Of a stretch of DNA of 64,000 nucleotides, positions 10,918 to 19,233 are shown piece after piece; the stretch's first letter is position 1, and each line of letters opens with the position of its first letter. Source of the DNA: Trichosphaerium sp. ATCC 40318 (Eukaryota; Protista; Tubulinea); assembly GCA_038496445.1 (NCBI GenBank), contig JALMLS010000577.1:124001-188000 (forward strand), read 5' to 3'. A program made the position numbers and the translations under genes. The notes beneath the pieces were generated by a model that ran no database searches, was not told the DNA's origin, and saw only the letters and a program-made list of their open reading frames with translations.

Positions 10918-11197
10918 AGTACCTACTTTTAAAGCCATGCTGATACAAACCTAACTATTGTTTACTTGGTGAAAATACATGTTTTATTGTTAATGATTGG
11001 AAGCGATCAGCTTTGGGGTGAGATGGTTGAATTTTGAGTTTGTCAATTTTTTTATTTTGAATTTTTGGCCAAATTTCTGTTAAGGACAGGTCATGGTTAA
11101 AACACACAAATGACACGTTTTGGGCACGTTTATTGCAAATATACAACACACAAATGGCACGTTTTAGGCACACATATTTTGTCTGATTCCACCACTG
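10918..11197. mobile_element. Solo right end of a longer member of the same hAT family
   Basis: 10922-10986 matches 10529-10594. It then carries ~175 extra bp and ends in TGTCTGATTCCACCACTG (the TIR with one CpG>TpG change). Confidence 0.85.
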
Positions 11198-12500
11198 TTA
11201 ACATACCTTCAAGTTTTCTGACCATAAATGCTAGAGGCTTTATTATTATATCACACACTGCTGACAAAATTATAATTACTTGAGTGTTTAAAATATCATC
11301 AAGGTGAGCAAACACTTTGATGTCCTGTGTTGTATTCTTTTGGCGATGATATTGGGTATGTGCAGCAAACAACAAGGTTTGTCGTTCAGGATCCAAAAAA
11401 TGCTTGAGCAATTTGTATGTGGAGCTCCAACATGTTGCAACATCTGTAGGAAAATAAACTGTTGTTCCGTTGTTAAAATACACTAAAAATCTCTTTGCAG
11501 CTCTGCAGTTTTTATAACACATAACAAATTTTCATAAAGCATTAATGCATGATTCTACACAACGCAAAGCAGCTTTTAGAATGAGTTCTAACATATGACA
11601 ATGGCATCCAAAAGAAACTGCTTTCATATTTTGAGCTAAAACTGACAACTTTTTAAAATCGGCAAAATTGTGCTTGTTGCTCCATGCAACAAGAAGTCTA
11701 CAAGCCTTCTTGATGTTAGCTGCATTGTCAGCTACATAACAAACAGGAGCAATCTTGTATTCTTTTAACACAGAGACAATCAAGTCCTAAAAAAAAATTC
11801 AGTATTTTCGTAACAAAAATAACGAAAACAACAAAAACAAAAAACCAATACAATATCAACCTACACGTATATTTTCAAAAGTGTGGCTAGCATCCAAACG
11901 CTTTTCTCCAAGGCAAATAGACCACAATTGCCAATTTTTATCCACAAACAATGCAGACATACCGCAGACATAATGCTCACCCATGAGCACCATCCCACCC
12001 ATTTGCGACAAACAATGGTCATACATCAGAATTTTGGAGTACAGTTTAGATAATTTCCTTTTGTTTAATAAACTCCATTATTGCCATCTCGTGTACTTTT
12101 TTCCACGTAGAGAGAACATAGCATGAGTTTAATTGCTCACAAAATGTCCTAAAACTGTCTTCTTCTTCATCGTGTTAAATGGTAAACAGAATAAGTATGA
12201 TATTTATGTACCTACCAAAGACCAAGGCTTTACATTTACCAAAATCCAAAAGATCAGTGCATTGTCCAAAGTATTTTGCACTTCTAACGGCAATGCTCCC
12301 TGTGAATATTCCAAAGGATTCCAATGGTTTTCCTTGAGAAGGTACAAGAGCTTTTCCAGACTTTTGAAACTCAGCACAGTTTTTAAAAAGGTGTGCAGTT
12401 AGGTTTGTAGTTGTTGTTAGCCATGTGATCTTACTAAAGGATTTGATAACTTCAAAAATAATAATACAACCATTTTTTTTAAACATGATGGTAGTGCCCA
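11198..12500 (-). pseudogene. hAT transposase relic (BED-finger remnant to the mid catalytic domain)
   Basis: TTNLTAHLFKNC; GW...MSALFVDKNWQL..SHTFENI; VADNAANIKKACRLL; FGCHCHMLEL; DVATCWSSTYKLLKHFL (canonical TRW.STY.ML.RF). Frameshifted and cut off by the TIR at 11197. Confidence 0.9.
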
Positions 12501-12830
12501 AATCCTCAGTCTATTTTTAGCTAATTGTTTATCTACACCAGCCAACTTGAAGGTGCCAACATCTAATAACCCCTCATATGCTCAATGACCACAATTGGAG
12601 CTAATCATGCAAGAGCATGGTGAGCAAATTTGCTTACATAACTGTAATACAGAAAGTATTGCTCTGTTTGCTAAGGTTCAAGCATAAGGGCAGACAGTTT
12701 ACCCTGGCCACTGTCAAGATTTGTTGAAGATATGTAAATTACAATAAATACTCAATGGACTACAACGTGTACTGATTTATTTACAATTACAATTTAGAGA
12801 TTAATACACATATTTAACATTATAAAACCA

Positions 12831-15800
12831 TTAATTACTTCGCACACCCAAAGCATCCAAATAGCGGCCAAAAGGCTTTTCACTAATTTCCCAGCCAGCT
12901 TGCTTGGACAAGGCACTGTGCAACTTTTCTTCCTTCTCATTTGTTGGCTTCCAATATTTAAATGCGGCTTTCATTGGCCCTGCCTCTGCTTGCCACTCTT
13001 GTTCTGCAAGGCATTTCATCTGCAAACAAGTTAGTTTGAACAGCAAAGAGTGAGGTGTTACCTGAGCAATAAAAAAAGCAATCTGCTGATTAAAATTTTG
13101 AATGTCTCTATCGAGGTCATCACGCAATGTTGGCGGTGTTGGTTTTTGGTTGTGTACGTCACTCAATATCCACTCTACACCAAAACTACACAACAAGAGT
13201 AAATAACTATAGGAGAGCACCAAGAGACGGACCTGTAGGCCTTTTTGCTGTGTGCAATGTCAAGGTGGCAAGGGACTCCCTGACGGAAGTTCTTGTACCA
13301 TTTATACAGGCTCTTTAGATTAAGACCCCATGGACTGTCTTTGAGGACTTGCCCCTTTATGCCCAACGATAATAAAAATGCTGGAAAGCTCAAAACATCC
13401 TTTAAAATAATATTAGAAGGCACAAAAAATTAGAAGAGTTGCGCTCGGCTATAAAATAAAGGCAAAAGGTGAGTACGTACCACAAGCTTATGCGTATCAA
13501 AGAGCAGTTGCACCAGTTTGTCCTGTGCCACCACTTCCCAAATGTCCTTGTGTACCCACATATTGGAGTAACTGTCATCCTATAGCGACTTGGTTAATCA
13601 CTGAATAAAAAAAACAAAAAAGCACATACAGCCGCTAAAAACCTGAGAAGATCTACGTTGTGACCTTCATTCTTCATCCTGACTGAGAAAAGAATTGCTT
13701 CTTCGATAAAATTGCGAGGGTTCTTCCACGTTGAACTGAAACGTCACGCGCTATAAGCACACAGAACAAAAAAAAAAAAGCTTGTGCGTACCTCTTTTCG
13801 AACTTGTCAATGTGCTTTGGATGAACATAAACGCCTCTGGACATATTGGGGTGGTCCACAAAATCTAGCGTGGCCGAAAACAGGTCAGCTATACTATCAC
13901 CGTAGCTCGCCACTGCGGCAATCTTGACACCATTCGCAAGAATACTGGACACCGCCTCTGTGTAGCGTTGGTAGCCCTCATCGTGAATGTGCAGAACGTC
14001 CATGTCGTTCGCAGGATCGAAAGGACCTACACGAGAAGTCACAGGACCATGAATACCTGCCAAAGACACTATCCCAACTCTTTGTTTGTCGGGTCTGATG
14101 ATGCCTAATAGTAATGGTCTGTTAGCGCTACTGGTCCCTTTTGCAACAGTAAATAATGTACGCACCTCGCTTTATCAAATCGGCAATGAGAATAGTGGCA
14201 ATTGGGGCGCCTTGGGAGTGTGTTGTGACGATAACAATGTTGCTTTGAATAATGCACTGGCGAAGTTTTTGTTCTGAAATGATCTGCTTCTTCAACGCTT
14301 TCAGTCGCATTGTTGTGCTTCCAGAGTTGGCGAGAGGGTACGATGTGATCATTGCGCCTGGAAGGTACTCTTTGATGGCGTCTCTGGTCAGATTGCACAA
14401 CCGTTTGGCAGCCTGCAATGACTCCATGTCTGCGCTCGATCGCACAGTGTGTGAGTGCCTTGCGAATGACAAGTCTGGTGCCCAGCCGTTGCATCCAAGA
14501 ATGCAAACTGTCTTGAGTTCATCCAGAGCGAATGTTGGCGATATCTCGTGTACACCTGGGAAGAATACGCGATCGTCTGCAACATGATAGTATACTGGTT
14601 CTTCTGTCCTTGGAGATTCGTCTTCTTCCTATTATAACATGGTTATTATTATATTACAATACTAATTATAATAAATACTGCTTGCACAGCTTTATTGGTC
14701 AGTTCAAAAAGTGGGTTGAAGTACCTTTAGAGAGAGCACAGTCAGTCTTCCCTGCAAACCCTCCAACTCTGTTTTTAATTGTTCGTCCTGTTCATCAGAT
14801 TTGAGTACCATATCGCTTACAGCCGTCTTTAAATCAGTCAATTCTTCCTCTATCTTCTCCTTGTGCAGCTCAGAGTTGCGTATGTGCTCCTTTAGCGCCT
14901 CAAGTATGATGGGCACGAGGTCTATGTATGAAATGCTCAAAAAACCAGTTTCCTCGTCTTCTGTGACGACATCAGGCAGAACACGCCGAACTTCTTGTGC
15001 AATCAATCCAATAACCTTTCTGCCACCGGTGTGTCGTTCAAAGTCAGTATTCTCCTTCCACCGGTAAGTTTTACCCTGCAACTTGGTGACAATATCTATC
15101 GCATCCACAATATCTTCAATATCCTTTTTCAGCCTAATATCAGAGTGTTGCAAGTACCCCTAAAAGCAAGGACAAAGGTGTAAGCAGGAGAGCATCCAAA
15201 CAACAACAAAAACCGTGGGTACCTGAGCACGAACGACGCCATTCACTTGCAAAGAGCCTGGGAGGTAATAATCCATGCCATTGGCGTGCCTAGGGACGGA
15301 TGGTGCCATTGGTTTTTGTGATTCAACTTTAATCTTCCTCTTTTTCGTGGCTGGTTGATACGTGTAAGCGGATGTGTGCGGTGCCAATTGGTCTGCAAAT
15401 ATATTCTGGTTCAAGTCCATCATCCCATTGGCAGGCAGCGTCGATTGGCTCATGCCTTGCGTCAAATCGCTAAGCATGCCCAATTGATTGATGCCATTGT
15501 TGTGTATGGTGCGTTGTGCCGGTAGAGCGCTTGTAAATGTAGGTACTGGCGAAACGATGGTGGGTCTGGTGTTTATAGGCGCCTTGTGAGACAATGATGG
15601 GAATGGGTTGCCCATCCCGCCGTTACTGCTAGGTTGTGGATGATTGTCCAGTAACTCGCGTGCAAACTTATCTAGATCTACATTGATCGTCTGGGAACGT
15701 GCCCTAAAACTGAGTTAAGAAGACCACACGTGCACGCACATACAAAACTAGCTGAACAAAATAATAAAATCTTTTTAGAGAGCGCTGTACCTAGGCTTGC

Positions 15801-16708
15801 CACTATCATGGGTAGAAAACTGAATAGTCTTTCCTGTTACAATCTGACTCATAGACTTTACGACCACGTGAAACTGAAGGTTTTTGCAGAGATCATAAAT
15901 CTTAACTTCAAGCTGCAATAAAAAAAAAACACGTAAGTTAGGATGCAACACGCCTACTGAACACGGGAAATTGTAGTGTGTACCTCCGTGTATGATCCCT
16001 CAGGCGTTGTTTCGTGTTTGTGATTGTCAAACGCGATTTTGCGCACCACGCAACAGTCCTTGGTGATTTCGTAGAGTGAAACACGAATGTCTTCGAACTG
16101 ATAAATTTCGCGTGACTTGATTGTCAGCTTTAACTTTTTCCCAACTTGCTTTGTTACGCGCAGTAGTTCCATTGAAGTAATTTGATGCCACTCGCCTTTG
16201 CGTCCTGGGTTTTTTTTTTGTTAGTTCTCGAAACACTTGAACTGAAACGTTTTGCGCAACAGCCATTTTTTTTTCTTGCTATTCTTTTGGTTGAATGGCG
16301 CTCATGAGTGTTTTAACAAAAAATATTTTTTTGTAGAGTACGTTTTTGTTAAACAGAAATTGTACCTCGTTGTTTTTGATACAACCCGACTGTCAAGGCA
16401 TCACTATTAACGAGTAAGAAACGCAACACAAAAAGTAAAAAAAAACGCTTACGGACGAAAATCCATTGAAGGTCTGCCATGATTTCCAATGGGCGAGAGC
16501 GTTTGTGGTGTTAAAGTTGGGGGCTCAGACTCTGCGTCTAATGATACAGATGTAGGAGTGCCTTGATCGGGAATATAATAGTCAAATAGCTCTTCTAGCG
16601 GCTGATCATCGAACATATCGCCTGTTATAACAGTTAATGCCGTGAACAATTTATTCACTTCTACTTACTAGCATCTAGCTCCATCTTAACGATCGAACCT
16701 AATTCCAT
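12831..16708 (-). CDS. Putative self-cleaving transcription factor: unclassified N-terminal beta-rich domain + NLS + Peptidase S74 (ICA) + coiled coil + YML020W-like alpha/beta-hydrolase
   Basis: Consecutive GT-AG introns keep one frame from ATG 16708 to TAA 12831. S74 motifs: GSLQVNGVVRAQGYLQH-SDIRLKKDI, YRWK, IGLIAQEV..VLPDVV. Hydrolase motifs: THSQG, LAGIHGP, VASYGDSI, HPNMSRGVYV, FKYWKPT. The junction between the halves (intron 14629-14724) is predicted only. Confidence 0.7.
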
Positions 16709-17041
16709 ACGAGGTGCCTTGCCCCGATTGTATTCGGGTAGAATTTTGGGTCAAATTTTTACAAAACCCGAATTTTTCACGGTCAAAATCCACCTGATTT
16801 TTCAGGAGATCAAAGAAACAGTAACAAAAAACAATCAACATTTGGCATCAGTGCAACTCCACCGTGATGTTTTTTAAAACACCCGATACTTGAAAGCATT
16901 CGCATAAAACACGTGTGCCATCACCCTTCCCTGCATTAAACGTGGCTGCATTTCACGTGCTTTCGTATTCCTTGCAGGTTGAGATGAATTGTCTGCCACT
17001 TCTCACACTGGGTGTGGTGAGTATTGGGTTTTTTTATAAAA

Positions 17042-19233
17042 TTACAAGTGTAAATTGGGTACAGTCCATGATTGCGGTAGGGACACGTCCATAGCGTGTG
17101 TGGGTAACTAGAAACAACGACTTAGCCTCAGTAAGTACGTCAAGCGCTTTGTACCGTTATGCCCACGATCCTACGCCGTATGCGTCGTCTGGCTAATTTA
17201 TACAAAGGCGTGTATTCCACTTGTGATGGCTGTCGCGTTTTGATAGGATGCAGACGTTCCACTGAAGGCTTCGTCATGACCTTCGCCAAACCACCGAAAA
17301 CCGACTCTGTTGCGCTTACTAACAACCTACGCGGAGTGAGGACTTTGCCCGTGGATTAGTACTACCTCTGTTCTGCTTTTTTCTGTGGATTGTACAGCTC
17401 CCAATCTTGGTCAGGGTATAGCGTCTTCAAAGCCTTAGGCCAATATGGCAGTACGCCTGCACCACCTCGCTTTAATATTTGGCGCTTGGACACTCTGTAC
17501 CTGTTATTCAATGTGTTAACCAAATAGAATGAATAAGCAAGAAAAATAGAGCACCATGCTGCTGGATTAGTAATGTGAAGTGTCTCCGCAATATTGTTTA
17601 AAAAGTGCTTTACGTTGGTGCCACCTTGCCAATATTTGTTTTCTTTGTACTCTAGTGTACGCCATGATTCGTTGGGATAGAGCACACGTAAAGCCTTGTA
17701 CAAAGAGCCGTCATATCTAACCAATTGTAGTCAGCAACTGAACACAAGTTCAGTGGGTTGCACCTGTGCAAGATATGTCTGCCACCAACTGCTTCTAAAC
17801 CACGCGTGGTTACGCCAACCCACCCTTCAACCGTCTTTACATTCAGCTTTTGTGCTAGGCGAGACATCCACAAACGTTGATTAGACAGAAGATGCTCTGA
17901 AGCTCGTTTCCTGGTATAACGTTACTTTCATGCTTGTCGTGCAAGTTAGCGTGCGCACTTAAACCGCATCTTCATCCACTTCATCTTCGGATATAAAACG
18001 GATAATGTATCCTTCAGGGAGCCAAACCTGATAACGTATCATTTAGAAAGAAAATCCCCAAACTCTCCATAGGGGGTGTACTTAGGGAGATGACTTACTT
18101 TGCTACTATTTTAATGGCAGCTGTAGGTGCTAGCAATGCCTTGTTGATGTGATACCAATCCTCTACTAGTTTAACATTCAATTGCTGACCAGCTTGATCG
18201 AACACACGGCGTTGATTCTCGACGTCATCCAAGTAACCTTTAGGTGTTGCTCTACGTGAGTAAATGTAAGTACGACATGGCTTGGTAAAGCGTGAATCGC
18301 ACGTGAATAAGGAAAGGCGCCATGAGAAGTTGGGGTATATTGCAGCCAGTGCGCGTGGCAAGCTCGAGTCATACGGCTCCAAGATGGCGGCCATGCGTGC
18401 ATCCACGTTCAGTAAGCGCTGTAGATCAACTCTGTACCACAGGTCCAGAGTTTTTAGATTCAATATAGCGGCTGCTTCTTCAAATCTTAGTCTTTGGTTG
18501 CTTACATCGTGCCAAAAACGCTGAGGGGCACTCCTGCATTGCAAATATTAGCAACTTGGTTTCACAACTAATGATACAACGCACACAAACCGCCACGGGT
18601 TCCATAAATGCGCTGGAAAAATAGATTCTAAAGCAGTTGATATCGAGCCAGCGAATCTGTTCAAGTTGATTAACCTCAGGCATGCACCGCTCTACGCACT
18701 TGTCGATTACCCTGGAGAATCCCAGGTCTGCAAAGTCACGCTTACGAACTCTATACCAATCGTCTAGAGACTTGATGGCGAGCTCTTCTCCCACAAAATC
18801 GAAAACGTGTAAAAGTGCTTCTCTACTGGTCCAGTGGTTGCGCGGTACAATCCTTGTCGTACATTAGTATAACAACGAAGAATTGGTCCTTAATGCAAGT
18901 CAATCGCACCTGAAGCGTGACACATCCCACACGTGATTTCTATAAATATTGGATAAAGCGCTTGACAACGAGCCACTGTAATACCTTAACAACCAGCAGT
19001 CAGATTTCAGTTTTATGCGATTGCACAATGAAAAACTCTATATACCCGCACAACACCTTTTTTCCGCCCACGGCACATACGTCAGCGCCCGTGGCGTAGT
19101 ACCAGTCGTCAACAACCTTTACTTCTAATCGCTCACCAACTTGATCAAACAAGTGACGTTGGTACTCCTCCTTATTACAATTGCTTTGTGTAGTGCGAAT
19201 TTGGCGCTTATTCGCGAGTAAGGTGGTTCGCAT
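17042..19233 (-). CDS. Tandem ~70-aa Trp-rich helical repeat protein, possibly mitochondrial
   Basis: About six repeats of P..(F/Y)W......R..FD.....L.....DDWY.V.......GG...L..Y.GSL..AL..(I/L)YP...W. The N-terminus MRTTLLANKRQIRTT is basic with no acidic residues. Confidence 0.7.

Follow-up and report, generated by a model that had tools for sequence, protein, structure and literature searches.

A stretch of 64,000 nucleotides from Trichosphaerium sp. ATCC 40318 (Eukaryota; Protista; Tubulinea; contig JALMLS010000577.1 of assembly GCA_038496445.1, positions 124,001 to 188,000), hereafter the window, carries on its minus strand an expressed gene for a protein of 988 residues, in which a Peptidase_S74/ICA self-cleavage domain is followed by an alpha/beta-hydrolase domain of the family PF26147. 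We think it probable, with a good deal of room for doubt, that this protein is the precursor of an ICA-processed tethered factor like MYRF and MrfA, built from different parts and having the lipase-fold module as its C-terminal partner. MYRF of animals and MrfA of Dictyostelium are membrane-tethered transcription factors processed by their ICA domains (PMC3742443, PMC3742440, PMC3828593, PMC8326128). The parts of the gene and its product are listed here in window coordinates.

12831..16708, minus strand: complete coding sequence of 14 exons and 13 GT..AG introns, 988 residues, from RNA contig joints and spliced translation.
16455..16708, minus strand: acidic, Pro-rich leader, residues 1-69, with 14 D/E versus 3 K/R.
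15694..16454, minus strand: N-domain, residues ~70-200 (~130 residues), encoded by exons 3 to 5 together with the 5' end of exon 6 (15223-15703).
15334..15345, minus strand: basic cluster KKRK, residues 317-320, within PATKKRKIK, ~43 residues upstream of the predicted cleavage site.
15145..15258, minus strand: pre-cleavage stalk GSLQVNGVVRAQGYLQH, residues 346-362, split by the intron 15160-15222.
14911..15144, minus strand: Peptidase_S74/ICA domain, residues 363-440, Pfam PF13884 at E 2.7e-18.
15142-15144 and 15127-15129, minus strand: codons of the ICA dyad, Ser363 and Lys368, within SDIRLKKDI.
14620..14910, minus strand: heptad-like helical segment, residues 441-505, spanning the intron 14629-14724, recognized by sequence character.
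12834..14598, minus strand: PF26147 alpha/beta-hydrolase domain, residues 513-988 (~475 residues).
14482-14490, 14215-14217, 13896-13898 and 13851-13853, minus strand: hydrolase key codons for NGW, Ser640, Asp726 and His741.
13265-13267 and 12942-12956, minus strand: hydrolase key codons for His874 and YWKPT.

Do the two halves belong to one gene? Logan contigs of four RNA runs (X1-X4) were aligned to window positions 12750-16750 and yielded 13 splice joints, all of them CT..AC on the plus strand, that is, GT..AG on the minus strand. The coding sequence starts with the ATG at 16708-16706, the first in-frame ATG past an upstream stop, and ends with the TAA at 12833-12831. Its spliced translation is one open reading frame (ORF) of 988 residues, whose limits match the interval 12831-16708 given in a preliminary description made from the sequence alone; every element listed there was found at the position assigned to it, within one gene and one ORF. 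The crucial joint, 14628|14725, which the same description had predicted, removes a 96-nt phase-0 intron (14629-14724) and links the S74 exon to the hydrolase exon. It is carried by record 1 of run X1 (2263 nt, depth 82), which spans 12764-15522 across seven introns, while X1 record 2 (654 nt) and contigs of X2 and X3 cover the exons on the 5' side, reaching 16718 or beyond. An ORF of an MMETSP transcript, P0001 (708 aa), starts at Met281, is identical to residues 281-988 and crosses the S74-hydrolase junction, but the reads behind it are probably those of X1, in which case it is no independent evidence.

This dependence leaves the junction to a single contig of a single run, the point in favor of another explanation, namely that two adjacent genes were joined by read-through or in a chimeric contig and that the hydrolase has its own start. 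Because the junction rests on one contig of one run, we drew independent support from orthologs. At least ten other non-redundant proteins combine S74 and PF26147, so homologs are not always separate genes, and at least five of these (P0008, P0016, P0018, P0019 and P0040) are encoded by single uninterrupted ORFs; the fusion is therefore independent of the splicing of the window gene. Four single-ORF fusions lie on gene-dense genomic contigs (L004 of 766 kb, L005, L006 and L007; 36-55% GC), and P0008 is a single ORF on the 7.7-kb contig L001, which carries one other gene in the same orientation. In the window itself the canonical GT..AG phase-0 intron keeps the 988-residue ORF open. The alternative named in the preliminary description, in which the hydrolase would begin at its own ATG (14585, with a 44-nt intron), is supported by no joint in the X1-X4 contigs. 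We regard the two-gene explanation as extremely improbable and effectively refuted.

The self-cleavage module resembles its characterized relatives in its key residues. Exon 14725-15159 gave the Pfam match to PF13884, and in a phmmer search of Protein Data Bank (PDB) sequences the ICA domain matched phage T5 pb1, of the long tail fiber, best (6F45, E 3.5e-6) and MyRF at E 4e-4 (7DC3, a crystallized construct of stalk and ICA domain). The Ser/Lys dyad was correctly read as intact: Ser363 and Lys368 align with S587(A)/K592 of MyRF in 7DC3 and with the dyad of T5 pb1, and the motif SDxRxK was found in 37 of the 38 family proteins checked. The stalk GSLQVNGVVRAQGYLQH also aligns in phmmer with the MyRF stalk 'alvvhGnVkvmGslmh' of 7DC3. 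In MyRF both S587 and K592 are indispensable for cleavage, the cut is made N-terminal to the Ser and only in the trimer, and the coiled coil C-terminal to the ICA domain drives trimerization (PMC8326128). For the window protein the sequence predicts His362|Ser363 as the scissile bond, and the helical segment 441-505 is a putative trimeric coiled coil.

What follows the ICA domain is different from MYRF. No 19-residue window reaches a Kyte-Doolittle value of 1.6 in a scan by hydropathy only, made with no dedicated transmembrane (TM) predictor, in agreement with the earlier reading that a TM anchor is missing; the highest values fall on strands and helices in the cores of the folded domains. The MYRF-specific domains PF13887 and PF13888 were not found either: the Pfam scan of P0001 gave PF13884 alone, and the precomputed Pfam annotation only PF13884 and PF26147. 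The label "MYRF-like" thus holds for the S74/ICA dyad and the order of the parts and fails for membership of the MYRF family, as the N-domain is not Ndt80 and neither a TM segment nor PF13887/PF13888 is present.

The C-terminal domain was assigned by profile and by fold. On the hydrolase side the spliced product contains the motifs EEDESP, TVCILGCNGW, THSQG (with Ser640), YGDSI (Asp726), PCHLDI (His874) and FKYWKPT, from which kinship with the fungal YML020W family had been proposed, and this proposal was borne out. Precomputed Pfam annotation places PF26147 (AB_HYDROLASE_YMC0-YMC35) on P0001 and on ten further fusion proteins, an exhaustive HMMER search (phmmer) with one hydrolase exon found members of this family at E 2e-7 to 4e-4, and the best protein-atlas cluster for the domain was PF26147 (score 0.91, 171 shared features). 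A word-indexed homolog search with the hydrolase region matched only its own protein. The AlphaFold2 (AF2) model of the domain (pTM 0.82) found as its best Foldseek match in AFDB Swiss-Prot yeast YML020W (E 3.4e-16, TM-score 0.58, residues 11-456), followed by YMR160W/Cvm1 (E 2e-8). Further structural matches, Ldp1, YDL109C, PPT1/2, FAM135 and PGAP1, form a DUF676/PGAP1-like lipase neighborhood, and those in the PDB were PPT1, monoglyceride lipases and similar enzymes at E ~1e-3. By its profile and its modeled fold, the domain belongs to PF26147.

YML020W is uncharacterized. Cvm1 (YMR160W) has no TM segment, acts at vacuolar contact sites both as a component and as a tether, and has an influence on sphingolipid levels (PMC9247719), and its localization and lipid phenotypes are all that has been published for the yeast members of PF26147 (PMC9247719). 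With these two yeast proteins the window domain shares fold, family and the motifs GW, HSQG, D, HP..R and W.P[ST]. In contrast, the N-termini of the yeast proteins are disordered and contain neither an ICA nor an Ig-like (immunoglobulin-like) domain, while the fused clade has ~70 extra residues inserted ahead of His874 and a helical tail at the C-terminus that is longer than theirs.

How widely is this architecture distributed? A search with a profile built from six relatives recovered ~35 proteins of eukaryotes in which this N-domain is combined with the ICA domain, and these are of two types. The hydrolase type, with S74 and PF26147, comprises P0008, P0015-19, P0024, P0029, P0038, P0040 and the window protein, and hydropathy revealed no TM segment after the ICA domain in any of them. 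The TM type (P0009-P0012, P0020-21, P0023, P0025-28 and P0032) has no hydrolase and carries 1-3 TM segments after the helical region; in P0011 a C2 domain lies between two of them. N-domain, basic cluster, ICA domain and helical segment are homologous between the types at 30-50% identity; the difference lies in what follows the coiled coil, TM segments in one and the hydrolase in the other. A tree built on N-domain and ICA domain together sets 11 of the 12 TM-type rows apart from the hydrolase type as one clade (SH-aLRT 100), and only P0009, on a long branch, falls outside it. With TM anchors at the same position in a sister branch, the earlier idea of a hydrolase in place of an anchor is a natural one. 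The TM-type subfamily looks like an undescribed family of MYRF-like tethered factors in its own right. A scan of metagenome loci with a closer N-domain alignment gave 2 loci.

Some features of the family's genes and proteins may be added here. The fused gene is intronless in the genomes of the orthologous contigs and has 13 introns in the window. Around the orthologs, gene order is conserved among metagenome and Logan contigs. A WRKY-domain gene lies just downstream of the fused ortholog in two contigs (L005:7841-8956 and L007:6678-7691), and a Renin-receptor (ATP6AP2-like) gene lies near it in two (L004:145-1575 and L007:7864-9003). P0038 (1822 aa), P0041 (1547 aa) and P0035 (811 aa) form a divergent sub-branch with large N-domain inserts and very long low-complexity linkers; PF26147 is retained in P0038, and no hydrolase match is recorded for P0041 and P0035.

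The N-terminal half contains the parts that would be released by cleavage. The leader contains the motif LEELFDYY, which has counterparts in relatives (LENLFELE, LESFVESS), and it may serve as an activation region. The N-domain is marked in the family alignment by the invariant motifs HKxRG, RVTKGxGK and THDSGK. We modeled this domain from the ortholog P0008 because that of the window protein is split across exons, and AF2 returned a confident all-beta Ig-like sandwich (pLDDT 87.9). Fold searches with it (Foldseek, VIA) gave generic Ig-like matches only, with an Ig-like AGS-C domain at the top (Z 9.5), and neither Ndt80 nor the MYRF DNA-binding domain was among the matches. On the model, the N-domain is an unclassified Ig-like beta-sandwich and not Ndt80 in any demonstrable sense. 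Farther along the chain, the KKRK cluster is invariant across 7 hydrolase-type proteins, TM-type relatives have a basic cluster at the same place, and it is a putative nuclear localization signal (NLS).

Put together, these parts suggest the following course for the tethered-factor precursor that we favor. After translation the ICA domain and the helical segment behind it would trimerize, and the Ser363/Lys368 dyad would then cut the chain at His362|Ser363. The freed trimeric N-fragment, comprising the acidic leader, the Ig-like domain with its conserved basic loops, the KKRK signal and the beta-stalk, would enter the nucleus and there could bind DNA, while the trimeric C-fragment (ICA domain, helical segment and PF26147 domain) would remain outside it. 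Since TM anchors occupy this position in the sister branch, the hydrolase-fold domain has most likely taken over the job of the anchor, that is, extranuclear placement, probably through peripheral binding to an organelle membrane; Cvm1, its structural relative in yeast, is membrane-associated with no TM segment. The lipase-fold domain may also act as a serine hydrolase, as Ser640, Asp726 and the invariant His residues are kept. A more far-reaching version, in which the PF26147 domain is a lipid-sensing peripheral tether in place of the TM anchor, trimerization and cleavage, or the release of the nuclear fragment, answer to lipid conditions at an organelle or contact site, and the N-domain represents a new Ig-fold family of DNA-binding domains, is tentative and on balance unlikely.

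What weighs against this reading comes from the N-domain, from the hydrolase domain and from the transcripts. As to the first, Pfam gave no match on the N-terminal exons or on 19 family N-domains, and the N-domain profile found none among PDB sequences. Among the fold matches, Runt (Z 7.4), Velvet (Z 7.2) and p53/Cep-1 (Z 6.9) all lie within the generic Ig background, as do the CudA-family matches in AFDB (E ~6-9e-4, 11-13% identity), which serve as a lead only. An identity with Ndt80, p53, Runt or Rel was considered and set aside as not demonstrable, the Z scores of the candidates being at the Ig background level. By sequence and model, therefore, the N-domain is not demonstrably related to a DNA-binding family of any kind.

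These results speak for another reading, in which the protein would be a trimeric enzyme or tether of the cytosol or of an organelle and not a transcription factor, with the ICA domain serving as a phage-style folding and trimerization chaperone for stalk and head, the Ig-like head binding protein, lipid or glycan, and KKRK being incidental or having another role. The generic Ig folds matched include adhesins and receptor domains, and the relative Cvm1 is indeed a tether (PMC9247719). However, both subfamilies keep KKRK or another basic cluster ~40 residues upstream of the cleavage site, the leader is acidic, and the order of the parts is exactly that of MYRF and MrfA. Moreover, the protein has no signal peptide or TM segment, unlike extracellular adhesin-type Ig proteins, and is for this reason probably not extracellular. 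We consider a trimeric enzyme or tether unlikely.

In the hydrolase domain the question is whether the fold is still an enzyme. The preliminary description had put forward a possible Ser/Asp/His triad. In the AF2 model Ser640 occupies a strand-Ser-helix nucleophile elbow, between a core strand and a helix, with Asp726 after the next-but-one strand. Across 15 sequences at 21-30% identity, 11 of them from fused and 4 from fungal proteins, Asp726, His741 (of an HPN motif) and His874 do not vary. The catalytic His is ambiguous, as this invariance holds for His741 and His874 alike, the helix predicted around His874 is a non-canonical position for such a residue, and the profile of the domain had no useful match among PDB sequences by which the His could be assigned by homology. 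The nucleophile motif varies as well: it is HTQG, with Thr for Ser, in P0024 and P0029, HSQA in P0008 and HSQS in P0015, with Ala or Ser at the Gly of GxSxG, whereas P0016, P0017, P0019 and P0040 have ESHG, a shift resembling GxSxG. From these Thr, Ala and Ser variants it follows that catalysis may be dispensable in parts of the clade.

The domain could accordingly be a pseudoenzyme that serves in localization or sensing only, and this would be compatible with the tethered-factor reading. The variability of the motif among orthologs (HTQG, HSQA, HSQS, ESHG) is in line with it, as are the replacement of the fungal oxyanion 'HG' by 'NG' or 'SG' in the fused proteins and the lack of any reported catalytic role of Cvm1 (PMC9247719). 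On the other hand, the Ser is kept in 9 of the 11 fused proteins, that of the window gene included, the Asp and both His are invariant over the set described above, and the elbow is formed in the model. Because Ser, Asp and His are conserved, the sequences suggest that many members, including the window protein, are active enzymes, and we hold loss of catalysis to be a serious possibility that falls short of probable. The analogy with Cvm1 also has its limit, for in the model comparison Cvm1 is the second-best structural match only (TM-score 0.54).

The last adverse point concerns the transcripts. In X1 the 3' half has depth 82 and the 5' half 13, on separate contigs, and in X2 the values are 8 and 5. 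The X1 mRNA was assembled as two non-overlapping contigs with a gap at ~15523-15660, inside one open exon (15223-15703) that encodes the low-complexity linker. The break in depth at 15520-15700 could come from 3' bias, from an assembly break or from an internal start giving an isoform that lacks the N-domain. A 5'-truncated isoform of this kind may exist, and nothing beyond the contig break and the depth points to one.

If the tethered-factor reading is retained, how does the protein compare with known systems? The same order of leader, beta-sandwich, NLS, beta-stalk, S74/ICA dyad, helical segment and C-terminal retention module is seen in MYRF and MrfA, and around the dyad of MYRF the nearby aromatic residues align too (YRW vs YRY). 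Unlike MYRF and MrfA, the window protein has no NDT80/PhoG, MYRF_ICA or MRF_C domain and no TM helix, its C-terminal module is a 475-residue alpha/beta-hydrolase fold, and sequence similarity is limited to the ICA domain (E 4e-4). With phage tailspikes and tail fibers, such as endosialidase K1F and T5 pb1 (6F45), it shares the Peptidase_S74 domain and the dyad S-D-x-R-x-K. In phages, however, the ICA domain forms the extreme C-terminus and is discarded, whereas here it is internal (residues 363-440 of 988) with a large domain downstream, in the product of an expressed gene that is split by 13 spliceosomal introns.

SREBP and Spt23/Mga2 are lipid-responsive tethered factors that are freed by other proteases or by the proteasome. 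The likeness to them is one of functional analogy only, a scheme in which a lipid-related module keeps a transcription factor out of the nucleus until proteolysis frees it; the folds are unrelated, SREBP and Spt23/Mga2 do not cleave themselves, and any dependence of the window protein on lipids is hypothetical. Should the lipid-sensing tether be confirmed, it would be an enzyme-tethered counterpart of SREBP or Mga2 operating on phage ICA chemistry.

To date, MYRF and MrfA are the only known tethered transcription factors with ICA processing, both with an Ndt80 DNA-binding domain and a TM anchor, and a 2026 survey of membrane-bound regulators contains only variants of Ndt80 with S74 (PMC13294678). 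In the literature on YML020W, on Peptidase_S74/PF13884 and on MYRF evolution we found no description of the S74-hydrolase fusion or of the N-domain family of the window protein, in accordance with the preliminary description, which knew of none for the architecture; for the TM-type subfamily, as far as the literature was searched, none was found either. The new components on the plan of an ICA-released tethered factor are thus an unclassified Ig-like head and a lipase-fold partner. A second, separate protein family of protists thus employs this phage-derived cutting module and occurs both TM-anchored and fused to PF26147, which suggests that the ICA "release switch" has been recombined with other parts more than once in eukaryotes. 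PF26147, conserved and almost uncharacterized, gains a testable functional context, its studied member Cvm1 acting in sphingolipid homeostasis. The fusion may connect a lipid-handling module directly with gene regulation, and the N-domain is flagged as a possible new family of DNA-binding domains.

The remaining details of the gene model are as follows, with introns in plus-strand coordinates.

13020-13061, 13186-13232, 13400-13480, 13580-13629 and 13736-13791: introns.
14105-14165, 14629-14724, 15160-15222 and 15704-15790: introns.
15913-15983, 16205-16365, 16404-16452 and 16622-16668: introns.
16669-16718, minus strand: short first coding exon, from RNA joints.
16366-16403, minus strand: 38-nt micro-exon, flanked by introns of 49 and 161 nt, encoding the start of the N-domain, DALTVGLYQKQRG.

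The micro-exon is backed by three runs and encodes QKQRG, the equivalent of the HKxRG motif; ab initio models could easily miss it. Direct joining of 16204 to exon 1 was also tried, and it brings a stop into frame; the RNA joints place the micro-exon between them.

Contigs of X2-X4, runs that are labeled as other organisms, differ from the window by single bases at 12966, 14526-14551, 14968-15019, 15283, 15736 and 15847, with four changes within 26 nt (14526-14551) in X4. These differences in coding exons indicate variation between strains or close species. The GC content of the window is ~41%. The flanking minus-strand ORFs, 11130-12026 and 17362-17873, had no Pfam match at E 0.01 or better. 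Among the flanking ORF fragments, one contains text similar to KKACRLLVAWS and looks transposase-like by eye, and another has repeated LYPxxxW motifs.

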